DNA of 64,000 nucleotides from the sequence record MW812343.1; one strand, given 5' to 3'. The notes beneath the pieces are model-generated. The model ran no database searches and was not told where the DNA came from. It saw nothing but the letters and a program-made list of their open reading frames with translations. Shown here piece after piece: positions 6,629 to 44,741 of the stretch (positions are counted from its first letter, which is position 1; each line of letters starts with the position of its first letter). The position numbers and the translations under genes were made by a program.

Positions 6629-6698
6629 TTTGCATTACCCGAGTCCCGAATGACATTCCGGAAAAATATCATCCATGGTCAAGGGTAATGCAGAACCA
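6629..6698 (+). ncRNA. 12-bp-stem RNA with ACCA tail
   Basis: TTTGCATTACCC/GGGTAATGCAGA followed by ACCA. Confidence 0.5.
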
Positions 6699-6702
6699 AA
6701 TT

Positions 6703-6762
6703 CCCGGCCCTTGCAGATAAAGCTTACCTGCATTAGCTGTCCCCTGCGGGGGTCGGGTACCA
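6703..6762 (+). ncRNA. 8-bp-stem RNA with TACCA tail
   Basis: CCCGGCCC/GGGTCGGG then T-ACCA; internal TGCAG/CTGCA hairpin. Confidence 0.45.
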
Positions 6763-6896
6763 CCTTTGTTCGTTTTGTTTTTTTCTTTCAATTGCCTGGC
6801 GGTATTGGTGGGAACAAAACGAATGAAGCCCTAGCGGGGGAAAAGCCGCTAACAACAACAGAAGCAGTAAAAACAGAAGTAAAAGCAGGAGTAGTT

Positions 6897-7709
6897 ATGT
6901 TTACTATCTTACGTAAAATCAATGGTAACCGCACACCAACCGAACACGAGTCCCCAACGCTGGGTGACACAAAGTCTCAAGTGTTCAAAGATGCGATGTC
7001 GCTACTGACCGAATCCAACAACGTGCATAACTGCATGGATTCTGGGATGGATGCGAAGCCGTGGATTGACGGCAAACCCAAACCGATTGAGGAATGGGTA
7101 GAGCGCTTTAATGCAGCGTTCGGCGCAACTGACAGAGATAACCAAGAACTGGTTGATTTGATCAGTGAGTTGGCACCGGGCATGTTCGACAAAACCAACG
7201 CGCGTTTTGCATCAGACTTCGGTCAACTGGAAGAAGCCTTCCTGAAGAACACCGGACAGACTATCATCTGGAAATGCCCGAAAGGGTTGCCGATTGATAT
7301 TCAGTTCGAAAACATCCCACGCCAAAGTGTAGAAACCCTACACACTACTCTTGACTTCATCGAAGCCGATGAGTTGAAGTTTGCTGTGTTCAACAGCAAA
7401 GCGCTGTGGGATGGGTATAACTCTGCTGAACTGTTTGGCGGGGTAGCCACCGAAATTTCCTCGGTAGAACTCCAGCACGTTTATCACGACGATACGGCAA
7501 TGCCGCAAGAAGCGGTACTCAAAGCCAGTCGTCGTGGCGACCGTACGTTAGACCAGGTTATCGGGGTGCTCGCTTATGGCAGCTCTGAAGAACCTGACCC
7601 GACGTCGGGCAATGTGCCGGTCACAGTGATGACCTACGAGTTTATCTACCAAGGCGATGAAGTCTACATCACGAACCGTCACGGTAAGACTGTGGACTCC
7701 ATCCGTTAA
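6897..7709 (+). CDS. hypothetical protein (270 aa)
   Basis: ATG 6897 with GCAGGAG RBS; the track's upstream extension runs through structured RNA and is unlikely to be coding. Confidence 0.8.
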   Translation: MFTILRKINGNRTPTEHESPTLGDTKSQVFKDAMSLLTESNNVHNCMDSGMDAKPWIDGKPKPIEEWVERFNAAFGATDRDNQELVDLISELAPGMFDKTNARFASDFGQLEEAFLKNTGQTIIWKCPKGLPIDIQFENIPRQSVETLHTTLDFIEADELKFAVFNSKALWDGYNSAELFGGVATEISSVELQHVYHDDTAMPQEAVLKASRRGDRTLDQVIGVLAYGSSEEPDPTSGNVPVTVMTYEFIYQGDEVYITNRHGKTVDSIR

Positions 7710-37398: not shown

Positions 37399-39102
37399 AT
37401 GCAGCAGATTAACATCACGCACACCACCATGGGGGTGCGAATTGAAGTTCCTATCCGACCGGTCGAGATAGCTATTAAGACGTGGGCGGAACGGAATCTG
37501 CACGCCCCGAAGATGGGAAAAGAGCGCGGCAAGATTACCGTGGAACAAGGTGACGGTTACTACGCCCACATGGAAGGCGCACGTAGCTTTATCTTCCACA
37601 AAGCCCATTTGGAGGAAATCCTCTCTATCATCAAGAACGCCATCATTGAGTACCGACTGGATGCAGAAGTGAAGCACCACAAGGTCGAGCGTTCTGAACC
37701 GTATCGTTGTACGTTTGAAAACTTCGGCACACCCATGATTGTGGATGATCCCGAGTCCCGCTTCTATTATCAGAATGAAGTGGTGGAGAAAGCACTCGAT
37801 CCCGATCGGATGCAGACCATCTTCGCCATTGATACGGGCAGGGGTAAGACTAAATCCCTCATGAAGGTGATGGTGAAGAAGCAGGTACGTACATCCCTCA
37901 TCATGCGTCCGACGTATGTGGATAAGTGGATTTCGGATATCTGCGATGATCCGACCGGCCTGCGTATCGACCGTGACAAAGTCTTGGTCTGCCGTGGGGT
38001 GCAAGGGATTATTGAAGCGTACGAGATGGGACTCAGTGGGGAATTAGACCGTCGGGATATCCGGGCGATTATCTTCCCAACCGTTTCTCTTCAGTTGTTT
38101 CTGAAAGAGTACATCAATACCGGCCACTCGATGGGGATTGACATCGAACGCTTTTATGATGTGCTGGGTGTGGGCCTGATCGGTATGGATGAGGTGCACG
38201 AACATTTCTATCTGGTGTACTTAGCAGGGATTATCTTGAACCCCTGTGCTGCCGTTGAAATGTCAGCGACGCTTGAACCGGGTGCTGCGAAGACCTTCAT
38301 CATCTCGCGTTATCTGGAACGCTTCCCAATGGACTTACGTCTGTCGGTTGAGCGTATCAAGGTGGTGGACATCCGTGCGTTCTATTACACACTGGATGAC
38401 AAAAAGATGGCGTGGTGGGCGACGAAGATGTCCCCGTATAACCACAAGTTGTTCGAAGGTAAGTTGATTCGGGAAGGTTTCCATGTTTCGTATTGCGAGA
38501 TGTGGTGGAATCTGATCGAGAAGGTGTTCCTGTCCAATTACCAACCGGGACAGAAAATCATCATCTTGTTCTCAACCGTTGACATGTGTGAGTTCTTCAC
38601 ACAGTTCTTGCATCAGAAGCTGGCAGGAACAGAGTTTAACGAGTTGATGGTGGCGAAGTATAACGGTGGCGATTCGTATGATGACTTCATCATGGCGGAG
38701 TTCGGTGTCTCAACACCTAACAAAGCCGGTACCGCGATAGACAAGCCGGGTATGGTCCACATGATTGTGACAGTGCCAGTAGATGACCAACAGCTGAACT
38801 TACAGATTGCCGGACGTCCGCGTCCTGTGCGTGAAGTGTTTGGTTGGGACATGAACCCGATTGTGTGGTTCGGGCATTGCATGAACATTGCTAAACACGG
38901 TACGTACCTGAATTCACGTATGCGTTCGCTGCGTGACACGGTATTGTCTTTCAAAGTTGCGACTTCCCCTTATGTTGTAAGGAAAACGTATGATAATGCC
39001 CCCAGTTCCAGCCGCCCCAACAGCCCCTTACGCCGGATTGACGTTGGCAGACTTTCTCGTAAAGGTGCTAAGGGCCTATCCCGGCGCAGAAGACGCCGCT
39101 AA
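37399..39102 (+). CDS. superfamily 2 (DEAD/DEAH-like) helicase (phiKZ gp75-like)
   Basis: DTGRGKT, MDEVHE, MSAT, STPNKAGTAID, QIAGRPR. Confidence 0.92.
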   Translation: MQQINITHTTMGVRIEVPIRPVEIAIKTWAERNLHAPKMGKERGKITVEQGDGYYAHMEGARSFIFHKAHLEEILSIIKNAIIEYRLDAEVKHHKVERSEPYRCTFENFGTPMIVDDPESRFYYQNEVVEKALDPDRMQTIFAIDTGRGKTKSLMKVMVKKQVRTSLIMRPTYVDKWISDICDDPTGLRIDRDKVLVCRGVQGIIEAYEMGLSGELDRRDIRAIIFPTVSLQLFLKEYINTGHSMGIDIERFYDVLGVGLIGMDEVHEHFYLVYLAGIILNPCAAVEMSATLEPGAAKTFIISRYLERFPMDLRLSVERIKVVDIRAFYYTLDDKKMAWWATKMSPYNHKLFEGKLIREGFHVSYCEMWWNLIEKVFLSNYQPGQKIIILFSTVDMCEFFTQFLHQKLAGTEFNELMVAKYNGGDSYDDFIMAEFGVSTPNKAGTAIDKPGMVHMIVTVPVDDQQLNLQIAGRPRPVREVFGWDMNPIVWFGHCMNIAKHGTYLNSRMRSLRDTVLSFKVATSPYVVRKTYDNAPSSSRPNSPLRRIDVGRLSRKGAKGLSRRRRRR

Positions 39103-39370: not shown

Positions 39371-39425
39371 TTACAGCGTTAGTGTATAATGTGTAGAGTC
39401 ACTTTCATTACAAAAGGAATATCCG

Positions 39426-40040
39426 ATGTCTCGTCGTAAAAAGCAGCCTGGTTTTAGCCCGCGTGAAGCAGCACGCGAACGTGTCCGTAGCATCATGCGC
39501 GGCATGAACACGACCGAGAACGTTTTCCTCGGTCATTCAAAGACCCACGCCGAGAAAATCGACCGTGAGTTTGAGCGAATCAATGCGCTGATGGGTGAAG
39601 ACCTGAAAGCGTATCTGACCGAATGGTTAAAAAGTTCTCAGGCTGCCTTCTTGGGTGCCATGCAGGATTTCAAAACGCGCCTGTTCGCAGTGCGTACTGA
39701 TGCCGATGCAAAGGCAACCAAACTGATGGATGTCATTGACGGCCACAAGTGGGCCGAAATCAAAGATGTCGTGTCAGTGGCGGAAATCGAGCTTTCGGAC
39801 TTTGACATTCAAATTGACATGATAGCACAGGAAACCCTGCTGGCTATCGTGGAAGCCGGTGCGGCTTACGAGCAGCGCCGTGAATGTGTCCGTGTGGGTC
39901 TGCACAACAACTGGACCCATGAAGCGATTCTGACCAAACTGCGCGAGCTGGATGCCCAAGCTGCCGAAGCTGCATTAAAAGCGGTAGAAGCAGAAGCAGC
40001 TGAACCCGAAGCAGAGCAAGAGGTAACTGCGAATGTCTAA
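39426..40040 (+). CDS. hypothetical coiled-coil protein
   Basis: 204 aa, AAAGGAA RBS, upstream AATTACA motif. Confidence 0.85.
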   Translation: MSRRKKQPGFSPREAARERVRSIMRGMNTTENVFLGHSKTHAEKIDREFERINALMGEDLKAYLTEWLKSSQAAFLGAMQDFKTRLFAVRTDADAKATKLMDVIDGHKWAEIKDVVSVAEIELSDFDIQIDMIAQETLLAIVEAGAAYEQRRECVRVGLHNNWTHEAILTKLRELDAQAAEAALKAVEAEAAEPEAEQEVTANV

Positions 40041-42135
40041 CGATCCGCGTCCGTCGTTCGGTGCTCCCGAACCGGAAACGGCTGAGGTCAAACTTCCTTC
40101 ACGCGAAACCCTGATGGGCAAAGGCGTGGAGGAAGTGGCCTTCGAGCTGGTAAAACTCAATCCCACTTTTTCTTTTGCCGAAGCCACTGAGCGGGCGAAA
40201 GGTCTGGTTATCCTGACTGCACCGGTGGAAGACACTCCACCGCCTGTGGTGGACACCGTAGCTGGCGTGCTCGATACGCCGCTTGGTGGTGACCGCGAAG
40301 CGACCCCAGAAGCTCTGGCAGCGCTTAGAAGCACAGAAAATCAATTGGAACAACCGGTCAAACTTGATCTGTCTCCAGTTGTAGAGCAACCGGCCCCAGC
40401 AGTGCAACCGGTTCAGCCGCGTGCTGAGCACATTGCTGAAACACCCGTGGTTGCTCGTGAAGTTCCAGCGCAAAGCCAAGAGTTCCGTTCTTCTACAGAA
40501 CCTGCGGCGATTGCTGATAACTTCTCTGCACCGAAACCTGCGCCGGTAAAAGAAGATGTGATTCCTGCCCCGGCACTGGACGCTGACGATGTGCCAGCGG
40601 ATCGCGATGAGCAGACGCCAAACCTCTCGAAAGAGAAACGTCGTCAAATTGACTTCGGGCCAGAGCCGCATCGCGCTGAAATCGCGACCATGGACCCGGA
40701 AGACCCACATCGTGTGCTGTTGCAAAGCGATGAGCTGATTGGTACCAACCAACCGTTGGCCGGTGAGCAAGAAGTCATGCAGTTCTTTGCCAGCATCCCA
40801 CGTAACCGTGAAGGTCGCCCGATGTTCCGCTCTGCGGCGGAAGAGGAGCGTTATCAGAAGCTCTTTACTGCACTGGAGCTGACTCCGCCGGTCATGATTA
40901 ATAACCGCGCTGCGTTCGACATGGCGCTGGAGCGTGAAGATACGTCATGGCAACAGACTATCAAACTGCCGAACAACAAGTATGTGTCTGCCGTTACTGA
41001 CCGTGGTGCAAATGCGCAGGGTGCACTGGCCTCACTGCGACGTCGTCGCGGTTCCGGTTCACCGGTATCGGTCTGGCTGCCTGCTACGGGTATCTTCGTG
41101 GGCTTCCGTGCGCCGCACGAAAACGACATGTGTGACTTCGATATTCGTATCACGTCAGAGCAGTCGAAAATTGGGATGTTCACGTACGGTCTGCTGTTGG
41201 CCTCGTCTTCGGGCGTGTATCTCCAGCACATGATCGAGCACTCGCTGAACTTTGCCGTTGAAACCTCCTACGATTGTCAGGGTCTGGATCTCAAAACCGC
41301 CCTGATGGATATCGTGGATGTGGATGACTACTGGCTGCTGATCATTGGTCCACTGATGGCGAAGTTCCCTGCGGGTATTCCGTGGAAGCTGCTGTGTCCG
41401 AACCACGAATGTGGTCATGAGCGTGAAGTGCGTCTGAACCTGGCTCGTTGTATCCGTATGGCGGATGGCCTGTTCTCTGACCTGCACCGTTCGCTGTGGC
41501 TGCGTCAACGTGGTAAAGGCCCGGATGCGATTATCGGTAACGAAGAGTACCTTCAATACCGTAAAGAGCTACCGAAAACCAAAGCCGCCCGTTTCCATTA
41601 CGAGCAGCTGGGTGTGACCGTTGAATTCGGACGCTCAACCATCGGCCAGTTCATTGACAACACCAATGCGTGGGTAGAAAAGATCAACACCTCTGCCACG
41701 AACGCACTGGCAAATCATGCGACTGAAACCGAACGTTCGCAGTATATTCGTCTGGCCGCTGAGAACCGCCGCTTGACGCGTTACGCGACCCACGTTAAAG
41801 CCATTACCGTTGAAGAGACGATTAAAGGCGAAGTGGTTGAGACCCGCGAAGAAGACCCAGACCGTATCTTCGAGATGTTAGAAGAACTTTCTTCTGATCG
41901 TCTGTACGTGCTGGCGTTTGAAAACGCGCTGTCAGCTTACAACGAAGAATCGCGTATGGCCGTGTTTGGTTACATGGGTCACGCGTGTCCGAGCTGTAAG
42001 ACCACCGAAGGTGAAGAAGACGGTCCGTTCCGTGGCATTGTTACCATTAGCCCGGACAAGGTTTTTTTCGCGCTATCTCGTGTGGTGTTCGAGATACAGA
42101 GAGTCTACTTACAACAATTCGAAAGTATTGGATAG
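40033..42135 (+). CDS. conserved protein with P/A/E-rich N-terminus and Cys-pair Zn motifs; probable tail-assembly chaperone-like (short form of frameshift pair)
   Basis: 700 aa, CPNHECG and CPSCK motifs; slippery site near the 3' end. Confidence 0.7.
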   Translation: MSNDPRPSFGAPEPETAEVKLPSRETLMGKGVEEVAFELVKLNPTFSFAEATERAKGLVILTAPVEDTPPPVVDTVAGVLDTPLGGDREATPEALAALRSTENQLEQPVKLDLSPVVEQPAPAVQPVQPRAEHIAETPVVAREVPAQSQEFRSSTEPAAIADNFSAPKPAPVKEDVIPAPALDADDVPADRDEQTPNLSKEKRRQIDFGPEPHRAEIATMDPEDPHRVLLQSDELIGTNQPLAGEQEVMQFFASIPRNREGRPMFRSAAEEERYQKLFTALELTPPVMINNRAAFDMALEREDTSWQQTIKLPNNKYVSAVTDRGANAQGALASLRRRRGSGSPVSVWLPATGIFVGFRAPHENDMCDFDIRITSEQSKIGMFTYGLLLASSSGVYLQHMIEHSLNFAVETSYDCQGLDLKTALMDIVDVDDYWLLIIGPLMAKFPAGIPWKLLCPNHECGHEREVRLNLARCIRMADGLFSDLHRSLWLRQRGKGPDAIIGNEEYLQYRKELPKTKAARFHYEQLGVTVEFGRSTIGQFIDNTNAWVEKINTSATNALANHATETERSQYIRLAAENRRLTRYATHVKAITVEETIKGEVVETREEDPDRIFEMLEELSSDRLYVLAFENALSAYNEESRMAVFGYMGHACPSCKTTEGEEDGPFRGIVTISPDKVFFALSRVVFEIQRVYLQQFESIG
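42060..42096 (+). promoter_or_regulatory. putative -1 programmed ribosomal frameshift signal
   Basis: G GTT TTT TTC (contains T TTT TTC heptamer in the 0 frame) followed by TATCTCG/CGAGATA hairpin; the -1 frame opens at 42051. Confidence 0.7.
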
Positions 42136-42542
42136 ACGCCGACGACGTTCCAGCCGAAGCTATCATCACAGCCATGAAGCTGGACACCACCTCGCTGTTC
42201 AAACGGCGAGACAGTCGACCTATCACGTACCAAGAAGCGCATGACGAGCTACTCTCCACGTACGACAGTATTCTCGGGTTAGAGACCGGTGAGAACAACA
42301 TCAGTGTCTCTGACTTCGAGAATCCGATTAACCAGAGCTTGTATGAAATCTGGGCAACCACGTATGTGCGAGAGGGTATCAGGGATCTGTTTGGTTACGA
42401 CCTTGATACTTGGCTTGATAGGCCGCGTTGGAAGTTGATGAAGCATCTGGAAATCGCAAAACGTCGTCGTGCTGAGCTGGACAATGCTAAGAAAGGCGCA
42501 ATCCCGCCAGAACTTGAGAAAGAACTGAAAGGGCGCATCTAA
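42069..42542 (+). CDS. C-terminal extension reached by -1 frameshift (annotated alone as 42174-42542)
   Basis: -1 frame open from 42051 to 42542; no Shine-Dalgarno before ATG 42174. Confidence 0.65.
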   Translation, partial: RAISCGVRDTESLLTTIRKYWIDADDVPAEAIITAMKLDTTSLFKRRDSRPITYQEAHDELLSTYDSILGLETGENNISVSDFENPINQSLYEIWATTYVREGIRDLFGYDLDTWLDRPRWKLMKHLEIAKRRRAELDNAKKGAIPPELEKELKGRI

Positions 42543-42570
42543 GGGAGCTTCGGCTCCCTTATATTTTTTT
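42541..42570 (+). terminator. terminator
   Basis: AAGGGAGC-TTCG-GCTCCCTT plus T-run. Confidence 0.8.
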
Positions 42571-42601
42571 GTTGTTATGAGACCCATTTTAGGAAACCGT
42601 C

Positions 42602-43456
42602 ATGACTGACTTATACGAAGACTATGCCGACACACTCGGTCTGGTGAGACAAGAAGGCCGCCTGGCCCCGGTGTTAGACTTAGTGTCGTTAGCTATCGAG
42701 TATGGTTACGATACGACGCTGATGGACATTTACACCGCGCAGATACCCGACATGAATGAAGAGTGTCTGCGACTGGAAGCGCTCATTAACCGCTGCGCGG
42801 TTGCCTTGGCGCAACGACTGGGTGTGGGGTTAAACCCACAAGTGGCTTACCGCAAGCCCAAAGAGGTGGTGCGTATTATCCACGGCCTGACTTCGGCTTT
42901 TGAAGAGTTCGAAGACACGGACACCCTGTATGGGATTCTGTTGTCGGGTGAACCCCATGCGTACATCCTTGAGAACATGGTGCGTTACGTCTACGGGGAT
43001 AACGACATCCACTTCGAAGACCTTGTCGTGGTCGTTGAGCCACGCGTGATTAACGTGATGCGTAACTTCTTGGCCGCTACGTCCGCAGAACAACAAGATG
43101 TGGGTGTCAACAACCCGCGCACGCAGCGCATCGTACAATTCCTGCGTTACTACCCACAGAACCCATCGGCCTATGTCTTCCTGAACTTGAGTGACACCTC
43201 GGACATTAACAGCGTTATCAGTGCGTTGGATTTCAACGAAGATACCGGTGTGGGTGAGAGTGAGCTGCTTGCCATCTACGCAGTCGGGCTGTCCATCATT
43301 GAGAACGACACCTTCGATAAAGCTTACGGGGCACTCGAAGGAATGTTGGCGCTGATTAACAGCGATGAGGTGCCAGAAGACCTGATCCTGAAAGACGGGT
43401 TAGGGGCACTGAAAGTTATCTACGGGCAAGAGGATGAAACCGATGAACCGGATTGA
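42602..43456 (+). CDS. conserved hypothetical protein
   Basis: 284 aa, TAGGA RBS, upstream TATG. Confidence 0.85.
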   Translation: MTDLYEDYADTLGLVRQEGRLAPVLDLVSLAIEYGYDTTLMDIYTAQIPDMNEECLRLEALINRCAVALAQRLGVGLNPQVAYRKPKEVVRIIHGLTSAFEEFEDTDTLYGILLSGEPHAYILENMVRYVYGDNDIHFEDLVVVVEPRVINVMRNFLAATSAEQQDVGVNNPRTQRIVQFLRYYPQNPSAYVFLNLSDTSDINSVISALDFNEDTGVGESELLAIYAVGLSIIENDTFDKAYGALEGMLALINSDEVPEDLILKDGLGALKVIYGQEDETDEPD

Positions 43457-44741
43457 GTATCTGATAGCCGCGTGTAATGCCGAGGCGTGGCGACGGCTGG
43501 TCTGGCGCATCGGTTTGTTTAACGTTTGTATCTTCCCCGAAGCCCACGAACGTCCTGAGCAGTATGACCTGACCTTTATTGAAGGGATGGCGCACTATTG
43601 GGATGAGGTGAATGGGCATTGGGAGTGGGTGCCGATTAAAGACGCTGTAAAGGACGCTGAGCTGTTTGTACCGGAGATGCGATTCCAACTACCGGTTGGG
43701 GGTTATCCGGGCTTAGAGAGCGAAATAGAGACGTCTGTGGGACGTTACGTCCTGAACTGGATTGTCATCTATTACGCGTTTGACAAACGGATGCCGTATC
43801 TGGAGACCGGCCATCCGATGGACATCCGTAAAGAGATGTACAGCCGGTGTGTGGACTACGAAGACGATGACCCAGAAAATGTGGGTGCCATCCGTCCGAG
43901 TATGGTCAACCGTTTTGTCAACGGTTTAGCGGAGCTGGCTCCACTGGCCAAAGCGATTGCCCCGACGGGTACGCTACGGTCGTGGACGGTACACCCGGAT
44001 ACCTACAAAATCCGTGATGCCTTGCTTGAGAAGCACAAAGACGAACTGGATAACCCAGCGGTCATTGTGAAGATTGAACAAGCACTGGATGAACTCGATA
44101 AAGAGTGGCTGTCCGGTGACCAGTCCGTGCAGTATTACGCCTCGAAGAAATCCCGAATGCGTCGTCGTAAACTGATGCTGATGTACGGGATTGAATCGGC
44201 CTTCCAAGAAGGTGCTGACTTTACCCTGATTCCAAATGCGCTGGTTGAGGTGGATAAAGAAGGGCTCAAGAATCTGGTGGCGAAGTATAACTCGATTCGT
44301 GACGGTTCCTTCTCCCGTGGTGCGGAAACCGCGAAAGGGGGTGAGCAGGTTCGTATCATCCAGATGATTTTCCAGAACCACAAAATCGTTGAGGGTGATT
44401 GCGGGACGAAGTTGGTGCATCAGGTCTTTATCACGGAGCTGAATGTAAAACGTTACCTCGGTATGAATGCCATGGTCAACGGCAAGCTGACCCCGATAAC
44501 CGACAGCTTCATGAAAGCGAACGTCGGTAAAATCATTAACCTGCGTCGCCCCATCCTATGTCAGATGGGTCACGTTGACTGCTGCGCGGCTTGTGCCTCG
44601 AATGAGAAAGCCAAGGAACCGCGTGCAATCGCTGCCGATATCTCCACGGCGTTCTCCAACGTCATGGGTGTGGCCATGGCAAAGATGCACGGTTCTGATA
44701 CCGTGGTGGTCGAGTTCAAACCCAAACTTCACATTACTTAA
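43443..44741 (+). CDS. virion RNA polymerase beta' subunit, middle/C-terminal piece (phiKZ gp80-like)
   Basis: RDGSFSRGAETAKGGE bridge-helix-like segment, EGDCGT, LRRPILC..DCCAAC Zn site. Confidence 0.88.
   Translation: MNRIEYLIAACNAEAWRRLVWRIGLFNVCIFPEAHERPEQYDLTFIEGMAHYWDEVNGHWEWVPIKDAVKDAELFVPEMRFQLPVGGYPGLESEIETSVGRYVLNWIVIYYAFDKRMPYLETGHPMDIRKEMYSRCVDYEDDDPENVGAIRPSMVNRFVNGLAELAPLAKAIAPTGTLRSWTVHPDTYKIRDALLEKHKDELDNPAVIVKIEQALDELDKEWLSGDQSVQYYASKKSRMRRRKLMLMYGIESAFQEGADFTLIPNALVEVDKEGLKNLVAKYNSIRDGSFSRGAETAKGGEQVRIIQMIFQNHKIVEGDCGTKLVHQVFITELNVKRYLGMNAMVNGKLTPITDSFMKANVGKIINLRRPILCQMGHVDCCAACASNEKAKEPRAIAADISTAFSNVMGVAMAKMHGSDTVVVEFKPKLHIT

Follow-up and report, generated by a model that had tools for sequence, protein, structure and literature searches.

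A candidate -1 frameshift site, conserved among related phages, in a chimallivirus core gene

The sequence analysed here, referred to as the window, is a stretch of 64,000 nucleotides from Erwinia phage pEa_SNUABM_6 (record MW812343.1; genus Machinavirus, which is placed in the Chimalliviridae). The two reading frames and the elements described within and directly after them lie on the plus strand. A 700-codon open reading frame at 40033-42135 (pEaSNUABM6_00056) is followed by a separately annotated gene at 42174-42542 (pEaSNUABM6_00057; 122 aa; PHROG 7580), the orthologue of PHIKZ076.4 and SPN3US gp40. The N-terminal ~280 residues of the large protein are variable and rich in Pro, Ala and Glu, while the conserved domain spans residues ~300-680. 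The large gene is the orthologue of the chimallivirus core gene cg18, which corresponds to phiKZ gp077, SPN3US gp39, Goslar gp081 and RAY gp267. The assignment was based on tblastn matches to PHIKZ077-type genes over residues 344-682, a match to PHROG 4585 at 1e-56 and Table S3 of PMC10299810.

A prior sequence-only reading had proposed that the two reading frames are joined by a programmed -1 frameshift, and each of the sequence features on which it relied was found to be present. The 0-frame codons at 42061-42069 are GTT TTT TTC, so that the heptamer T TTT TTC occupies 42063-42069 (Phe678-Phe679) in the X XXY YYZ phase, within a run of seven T at 42062-42068. The -1 frame contains a TAG at 42048-42050 and is then open from 42051 through the TAA that ends at 42542, a total of 163 codons, of which the part that would be read after the shift is 42069-42542 (157 codons plus the stop). 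There is no ATG, GTG or TTG in this frame before ATG 42174. Moreover, ATG 42174 lacks a purine-rich motif at -7 to -12, whereas five neighbouring starts have one. The predicted sizes are also correct, since 679 codons to the end of the heptamer and 157 codons in the -1 frame give 836 residues, as compared with 700. Finally, TATCTCG (42074-42080) and CGAGATA (42090-42096) form a perfect 7-bp stem with a 9-nt loop that begins 4 nt after the heptamer. The arrangement is more than chance. Of the 17 runs of seven or more T in the window, the run at 42062 is the only one that lies deep inside a long ORF, the rest being intergenic or in terminator tails, and the site is conserved far beyond what synonymous drift allows.

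To determine whether the geometry is shared, 75 related loci, phiKZ (PHIKZ077/PHIKZ076.4) and SPN3US among them, were compared. Subfamily alignments were used to collect relatives because the whole-family alignment lacked a conserved stretch. The loci comprise 26 loci (19 distinct junctions) of the SPN3US/Machina/Erskine/Derbicus/Wellington clade, 6 distant isolates including the phiKZ-type KTN4, 37 IMG/VR contigs at 23-31% identity and 6 further isolates including 201phi2-1, PCH45, Halocynthia phage JM-2012 and Bacillus phage AgentSmith. The downstream domain is in the -1 frame in 75 of 75 loci. T TTT TTC or T TTT TTT is present in the 0-frame phase in 73 of 75, and the remaining two, pVa-21 and BRkr, keep a T-TTY tetramer at the same Phe codon. 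Orthologues that lack the motif or carry -1 stops had been named beforehand as evidence that would count against a frameshift, and this test failed to refute it in 75 of 75 loci.

The pattern of constraint was examined in the 19 distinct junctions. The third positions of the three codons spanning the heptamer never vary, whereas the 19 third positions just upstream have a mean pairwise difference of 0.457. The -1 frame holds stops in 17 of 19 sequences within the 18 codons before the site and in 0 of 19 after it. Between the 0-frame stop and the position of the window's ATG, variability peaks at -1-frame third positions (0.582 against 0.246 at second positions), and that frame alone is stop-free. 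The coding signal in the -1 frame reaches up to the T run. In the overlap at 42070-42135, which consists of 21 codons and the 0-frame TAG at 42133-42135, both frames are conserved at the amino acid level, with 7 of 21 columns invariant in the 0 frame, 9 of 21 in the -1 frame and 3 of 20 in the +1 control. The first 30 nt are almost invariant, including the third positions of both frames, although conservation inside the overlap cannot by itself be assigned to one frame. The 0-frame TAG lies at exactly +64 nt in 19 of 19 sequences and is kept by an NTA codon in the -1 frame. Additionally, two Phe and a Leu around the site are invariant family-wide in the 0 frame.

No start codon of the downstream domain is conserved. 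ATG 42174 is replaced by CTG, CTC or CTT in most other genera, and the first ATG falls at codon 35, 37, 61, 68, 79, 86, 95, 123 or 124 of the ~151-162-codon -1 reading frame. Database calls of the small protein start at arbitrary points inside the conserved domain, and the annotated phiKZ start cuts off conserved residues. The possibility of a fused ancestral form was also considered. However, none was present among 47 clusters of the large protein, all of 616-706 aa, or among 78 representative hits to the small domain. One sequence, P0081, proved to be a contig fragment with one extra frame change rather than a clean fusion.

The hairpin at 42074-42096 was evaluated as a stimulator, but that role remains unproven. 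The hairpin is real but not distinctive. The stem is weak (about -7 kcal/mol) and starts only 4 nt from the heptamer, the z-score of the region is +0.87 to +1.21 against shuffles and no compensatory changes were seen. The outer pairs are broken in half or more of the relatives, the hairpin is disrupted in Wellington-like relatives and it is absent in distant groups. RNAalifold, single-sequence folding and pair counting gave no support for a conserved stimulatory structure, and a search of Rfam revealed no frameshift element.

The most likely explanation, to which we assign a probability of about 0.65, is that gene 56 carries a programmed -1 ribosomal frameshift site. In this view, most ribosomes would read through the heptamer in frame and stop 22 codons later, giving a 700-aa protein, while a fraction would slip back one base when tRNA-Phe occupies the P and A sites on UUU UUC and continue to 42542, giving an 836-aa protein. 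The last 21 residues, a predicted C-terminal helix, would be replaced by a 157-residue, mostly helical extension, of which the last ~90 residues form a domain conserved across the family. The gene annotated at 42174-42542 would then be the tail of the second isoform and not an independently initiated protein. Since the 0-frame tail and its stop are also conserved, both products are probably made. The analysis establishes the site, the frame geometry, their conservation, the coding signal in the -1 frame upstream of any start codon and the absence of fused or start-bearing versions in the sequences examined. That the shift is ribosomal rather than transcriptional, its efficiency, the production of the transframe polypeptide and the function of both isoforms are inferred from sequence comparison, as the mass-spectrometry and ribosome data that could be consulted do not address the point and offer neither a peptide spanning the site nor a band of the larger size. 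In E. coli, H_HH.U_UU.Y heptamers are among the most shift-prone, and U_UU.U_UU.C shifts at more than 0.1% without a stimulator and is used by some IS elements (PMC4066793). Furthermore, in phiKZ TnSeq data both PHIKZ077 and PHIKZ076.4 lack filtered insertions, whereas the neighbours 076.2 and 076.3 carry thousands of reads and only 25 of 210 small genes lack insertions (PMC12676376). ASO knock-down data for PHIKZ077 are marked 'tox' and are uninformative.

It is possible, though less likely, that the same transframe protein arises by transcriptional slippage, the phage or host RNA polymerase adding one extra U on the T run in a fraction of transcripts, which would then encode the long form in one continuous frame. 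A T7-T8 run could equally support RNA polymerase slippage. The run is 7-8 T in most lineages, U7 is under-represented in genes in all frames, possibly because of slippage (PMC4066793), these phages all share phage-encoded multisubunit RNA polymerases of unknown fidelity and no convincing RNA stimulator of a ribosomal shift was found. Slippage sites of bacterial RNA polymerase are typically homopolymers of 9 or more A/T, irrespective of the reading phase, and the run is 7 T here and 5-8 T in relatives. However, six lineages have only T6 followed by C and pVa-21 and BRkr have only T5, runs that are short for polymerase slippage but still form a shift-prone heptamer or tetramer in the correct phase. 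The run always sits in the X XXY YYZ phase, which matters to a ribosome and not to a polymerase, although the conserved Phe-Phe partly explains it.

An unlikely alternative is that there are two separate proteins, the downstream ORF being translated from ATG 42174 here and, in relatives, from other, possibly non-canonical starts or by termination-reinitiation. The database records annotate two genes, and in phiKZ RNA-seq tables PHIKZ076.4 has several-fold more counts than PHIKZ077, which could mean a separate 3' transcript. In this reading the T run is merely the codons of the conserved Phe-Phe, which accounts for four of the seven T's. Against this stand the lack of any conserved start codon, a first ATG as late as codon 123-124 of a ~159-codon frame, the lack of a Shine-Dalgarno at ATG 42174, unlike its neighbours, the stop-free -1 coding signature upstream of any start, the frame open across the T run in 75 of 75 loci despite stops just upstream in 17 of 19, and the invariant synonymous positions of the heptamer. 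A homopolymer sequencing or assembly error, or a decaying gene, the true gene being a single ORF, is effectively refuted, even though homopolymers are error-prone and some records are visibly fragmented (the SPFM phages, P0081 and one further locus, L071), because the same offset appears in 75 loci from many laboratories, sequencing platforms and metagenomes, is kept with runs of 5, 6, 7 and 8 T, is accompanied by a conserved 0-frame tail and stop, and involves two parts that both look fitness-conferring in phiKZ.

The function of the protein was investigated by sequence and fold comparison. Searches of Pfam, PHROG and PDB sequences and folds with the large protein gave no named function, and no Pfam or annotated PHROG hit was obtained for 17 diverse members. 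A structural model (pLDDT 81.8, pTM 0.80) was compared with BFVD using Foldseek. The only remote fold matches of the conserved domain were to proteins named 'Baseplate hub assembly protein, bacteriophage T4-like', 'Baseplate hub subunit' and 'Baseplate hub assembly chaperone' (E 1.6e-5 to 1.7e-3, probability 1.0, target-normalised TM 0.49-0.62) and, at E 0.15, 'Gp26 base plate hub subunit', a weak resemblance that no solved structure of the family exists to confirm. The depositors of three relatives used the same name. The AlphaFold model of the -1 piece was poor (pLDDT 52), and its fold search found only its own uncharacterised orthologues. T4 gp51 is needed for assembly but absent from the particle (Leiman et al. 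2010, PMC3004832). The T4-type proteins are 250-285 aa, have no Pfam or PHROG link to cg18 at the sequence level and are not known to be frameshifted. A weak inference is that the cg18 product is a non-virion assembly factor of the T4 gp26/gp51 hub-chaperone type, made in two forms at a fixed ratio.

The interpretation given in the sequence-only reading was thus supported only in part. The -1 recoding event is strongly backed by the comparative evidence, the gene is a chimallivirus core gene and every database record examined annotates two genes or omits the second, as had been anticipated. The suggested comparison with T4 gp26/gp51 was apt. However, membership in the lambda G/GT or P2 E/E' tail-chaperone family was not supported. 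Tail assembly chaperone genes of this type (Xu, Hendrix and Duda 2004) are reported to have a conserved -1 shift near the 3' end of a phage morphogenesis-type gene that yields a short and a C-terminally extended form sharing the N-terminal part, a slip site conserved more strongly than the protein sequence, and two genes in pipeline annotations, all of which are paralleled by the frameshift proposed here. Moreover, phiKZ gp77 is not mentioned in the phiKZ virion atlas paper, as expected for a chaperone. Nevertheless, no Pfam tail-chaperone hit, PDB sequence or fold hit was found, and the BFVD hits do not include tail chaperones. The upstream product is 530-700 aa, not ~100-150 aa, and is about five times larger. 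Nor does the gene lie between tube and tape-measure genes. The looser idea of an assembly chaperone that uses a frameshift remains a live but weakly supported analogy. In dnaX, the IS1/IS3 families and T7 gene 10A/10B, a heptamer of the X_XX.Z_ZZ.N type gives a fixed ratio of two proteins with a common N-terminus, as is proposed here, but those systems usually have a defined stimulator (hairpin, pseudoknot or internal Shine-Dalgarno), none being established here, and the proteins are unrelated.

Tentatively, the frameshift may be an ancient, obligatory feature of a hub- or tail-assembly factor shared by all phiKZ-like jumbo phages, in Gram-negative and Gram-positive hosts alike, and the functional counterpart in this lineage of the G/GT frameshift. 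The short form would act as the chaperone proper, the long form would use its conserved C-terminal domain to tether a partner (tape measure, tube or hub), and their ratio would set assembly stoichiometry. This would also add an overlooked, essential coding region to the core genome of the family.

Programmed -1 frameshifting is a known mechanism. This instance, however, sits in a core gene of a heavily studied family (phiKZ, Goslar, SPN3US, 201phi2-1, PCH45), is conserved in every relative examined and appears to be unannotated in more than 200 GenBank genomes. Searches of the accessible literature for a frameshift in phiKZ gp77, SPN3US gp39/40 or chimalliviruses found no report. If the frameshift is real, cg18 has two isoforms, the small hypothetical gene after it (PHIKZ076.4, SPN3US gp40 and others), a stretch left unannotated in some records, is not a gene of its own, proteomic databases for these phages lack the long form, and genetic screens that score the two ORFs separately should be reread. 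It would also provide the recoding field with a deep, diverse alignment of a U-rich slip site with no obvious stimulator.

The neighbours of the two ORFs are a putative helicase (37399-39102) and a non-virion RNA polymerase beta subunit (43443-44741). The product of gene 55 of the window shows no BLASTP similarity to phiKZ gp78 and, therefore, a conserved gene pair is not claimed. Immediately after the -1 ORF there is a terminator-like GC hairpin plus T run (42540-42570), so that the two ORFs look like the end of one transcription unit.

In the record of Erwinia phage pEa_SNUABM_6 (MW812343.1; Machinavirus, a genus placed in Chimalliviridae in the current taxonomy), the region 39400-43500, which by megablast matches that record at 100% with identical coordinates, is annotated with five hypothetical proteins, including pEaSNUABM6_00056 (40033-42135) and pEaSNUABM6_00057 (42174-42542). 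The sequence-only reading had proposed that the two ORFs are joined by a programmed -1 frameshift, and each of the sequence features on which that proposal rested was found to be present. The 0-frame codons GTT TTT TTC occupy 42061-42069, so that T TTT TTC (42063-42069) is a canonical X XXY YYZ heptamer. The downstream ORF is in the -1 frame relative to the upstream one; this frame opens after the TAG at 42048-50, closes at 42542 and holds no ATG, GTG or TTG before 42174. The 7-bp hairpin at 42074-42096 exists. The ATG at 42174 has no purine-rich motif at -7 to -12, whereas the starts at 39426, 40033, 42602, 43443 and 44753 all have one. The predicted lengths are also correct, 679 + 157 = 836 codons against 700. 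Of the 17 runs of seven or more T in the 64-kb window, nearly all are intergenic or terminator tails, and the run at 42062 is the only one deep in a long ORF. Another T7 run, at 6778-6784, lies inside a stop-to-stop open frame (6654-7706), but the sequence around it looks intergenic and the real start is probably downstream. A terminator-like 9-bp GC hairpin followed by a T run was found directly after the -1 ORF (42540-42570), and most other T7+ runs in the window are similar intergenic tails.

The junction was first compared among close and middle-distance relatives. In Caitlin (73% DNA identity), the heptamer and the next ~20 nt are identical to the window while the flanks diverge, and the ATG of the window is CTG. 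A tblastn search with the small protein found 64 phage records; the annotated start of the small gene differs in every genus, and the match always begins 38 nt after the stop of the large gene. Examination of 26 loci of the SPN3US/Machina/Erskine/Derbicus/Wellington clade, including metagenome contigs, gave 19 distinct junctions. The heptamer is T TTT TTC in 19 of 19, and the 0-frame TAG lies exactly 64 nt after it in 19 of 19. The -1 frame then runs for 151-162 codons, and the first ATG in that frame falls at codon 35, 37, 61, 68, 79, 86, 95, 123 or 124.

Frame-specific variability was measured in these 19 sequences. Upstream of the site, variability is concentrated at 0-frame third positions (0.457 against 0.16 and 0.15), but the three third positions within the heptamer and the preceding codon never vary. 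After the 0-frame stop and before the ATG of the window, variability peaks at -1-frame third positions (0.582) and is lowest at second positions (0.246). Only the -1 frame is stop-free in this interval; the other frames have stops in 6 of 19 sequences. In the 18 codons before the heptamer, the -1 frame has a stop in 17 of 19 sequences, while after it there is a stop in none. Within the 21-codon overlap both frames look constrained. The 0 frame has 7 of 21 invariant columns (identity 0.63) and the -1 frame has 9 of 21 (0.69), whereas the +1 control has 3 of 20 (0.51) and stops in 7 of 19. The first 30 nt after the heptamer are nearly invariant, including third positions of both frames, and the 0-frame TAG is kept by an NTA codon in the -1 frame in all sequences. 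These patterns were interpreted as dual coding, that is, both the 700-aa form with its defined C-terminus and the transframe form are inferred to be under selection.

The same arrangement was sought in distant relatives. A tblastn search with the large protein found 174 records (226 with the phiKZ-type query), and the alignments end at residue ~681-683, which is the slip site. In KTN4/phiKZ, RSL2, Ea35-70, Ea277G, pVa-21 and BRkr, the next small ORF is in the -1 frame and that frame is open back across the conserved Phe codons. Four of these have T7-T8 in phase, while pVa-21 and BRkr have T5, leaving a T-TTY tetramer. The phiKZ pair is PHIKZ077 and PHIKZ076.4; the annotated start of PHIKZ076.4 lies 85 codons after the T run and cuts into residues conserved across the family. 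In two phiKZ-like records (OP310984.1 and PQ758385.1) the downstream ORF, about 500 nt after the PHIKZ077 orthologue, is not annotated at all, which leaves an apparent non-coding gap. Thirty-seven IMG/VR loci at 23-31% identity all have the downstream domain, as detected with an HMM built from an alignment, in the -1 frame, with T TTT TTC or T TTT TTT in phase inside the overlap. One of these loci, L071, has one additional frame change elsewhere in the large gene, probably an assembly error, but the same junction. The arrangement is also present in 201phi2-1 (gp136/gp135), PCH45, Halocynthia phage JM-2012 and Bacillus phage AgentSmith. BONAISHI and Aeromonas D9 have the heptamer and a 168-190-codon -1 ORF, although the HMM does not reach them. 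In total, 75 of 75 loci have the -1 geometry and 73 of 75 have the heptamer.

The possibility was considered that fused or self-starting versions of the downstream domain exist. However, all 47 clusters of the large protein are 616-706 aa long. A profile of the small domain searched against 1.84 billion representatives gave 78 hits, nearly all of 66-186 aa, and their first residue falls at varied profile positions, as expected if gene callers pick arbitrary internal starts. The only hit that combines both parts, P0081, is a 312-aa Logan contig fragment with an extra frame change inside the large gene, so that one called protein reads part of the large protein and then the -1 piece from its first residue; this is probably also an assembly error. 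The records of the SPFM Salmonella phages likewise give fragmentary calls of this gene.

In E. coli, H_HH.U_UU.Y heptamers are among the most efficient; U_UU.U_UU.C and U_UU.U_UU.U shift at more than 0.1% without stimulators, and U_UU.Y are the second-best tetramers (PMC4066793). This suits a family whose hosts range from Pseudomonas to Bacillus. The hairpin at 42074-42096, which the sequence-only reading had placed after the slippery site, is only a candidate stimulator, since it is weak and no more stable than shuffled sequence. It has no compensatory changes, its outer pairs are broken in half or more of the relatives, and its core is broken without compensation in Wellington-like phages. 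Distant groups show no common structure, and a search of Rfam gave nothing above threshold.

The interpretation offered by the sequence-only reading is therefore supported only in part. The -1 frameshift is strongly supported by comparative evidence; the site, its geometry and their conservation are observed directly in the sequences, while the shift itself is inferred and unproven at the protein level. The assignment to the G/GT family of tail chaperones is not supported. Recoding in the -1 direction, of either kind, is very likely, and a ribosomal frameshift is given a probability of about 0.65. Transcriptional slippage on the T run would give the same protein and cannot be excluded, but it is the less likely alternative because the T5 and T6C lineages and the constant phase of the run favor the ribosome. 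A search of the literature found no paper that combines frameshift or slippage with these phages or genes, and no examined record joins the two ORFs. While -1 frameshifting is an established mechanism, the instance inferred in this gene appears to be new.

Transposon insertion data from phiKZ bear on the function of the downstream part. In TnSeq, PHIKZ077 (1602 nt) and PHIKZ076.4 (243 nt) have no filtered insertions, and with all reads they have 16 and 2 low-read sites, respectively. The adjacent 076.2 and 076.3 carry thousands of reads, and only 25 of 210 genes under 500 bp lack insertions (PMC12676376). The next genes are on the other strand, so polarity does not explain this result. However, RNA-seq counts over the 243-nt PHIKZ076.4 are several-fold higher than those over the 1602-nt PHIKZ077 (PMC12571901, supplementary file 7), an unexplained difference for which a stable 3' fragment or an internal transcription start are possible causes.

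The identity of the protein was examined by sequence and structure searches. Pfam gave no hit, and the matching PHROGs, 8054/4585 and 7580, have unknown function. The gene is core gene cg18 (Goslar gp081, phiKZ gp077, RAY gp267, listed as hypothetical), but the downstream ORF is not in the core list (PMC10299810, Table S3). An AlphaFold model of aa 280-700 is confident (pLDDT 81.8, pTM 0.80) and places the slip site at the start of a predicted C-terminal helix; in the long form, the part of that helix after the slip site would be replaced by the extension, which is itself predicted to be helical at low confidence. Foldseek found nothing in the PDB. In BFVD it found the chimallivirus orthologues and then, at E 1.6e-5 to 1.7e-3, proteins of 250-285 aa named T4-like baseplate hub assembly protein, subunit or chaperone, and Aeromonas phage 25 Gp26 at E 0.15. 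T4 gp26 and gp51 are listed as hub assembly chaperones and gp51 is absent from the particle (PMC3004832), and phiKZ gp77 is not mentioned in the phiKZ virion atlas paper. An analogy to hub-assembly chaperones is therefore possible, but it is a lead rather than a result.

The gene that precedes the 700-aa ORF (39426-40040; 204 aa, PHROG 8045) overlaps its start by 8 nt and shows no BLASTP similarity to phiKZ gp78, which holds the same position. Four near-invariant cysteines at codons 455, 460, 652 and 655 of ORF 40033-42135, in two C-x-x(-x-x)-C pairs, suggest a zinc-binding site in the conserved domain, although RSL2 lacks the second pair. The N-terminal region (40033-40870, aa 1 to ~280) is rich in Pro, Ala and Glu, varies greatly in length between relatives and is almost absent in phiKZ-type orthologues, so it is probably disordered.
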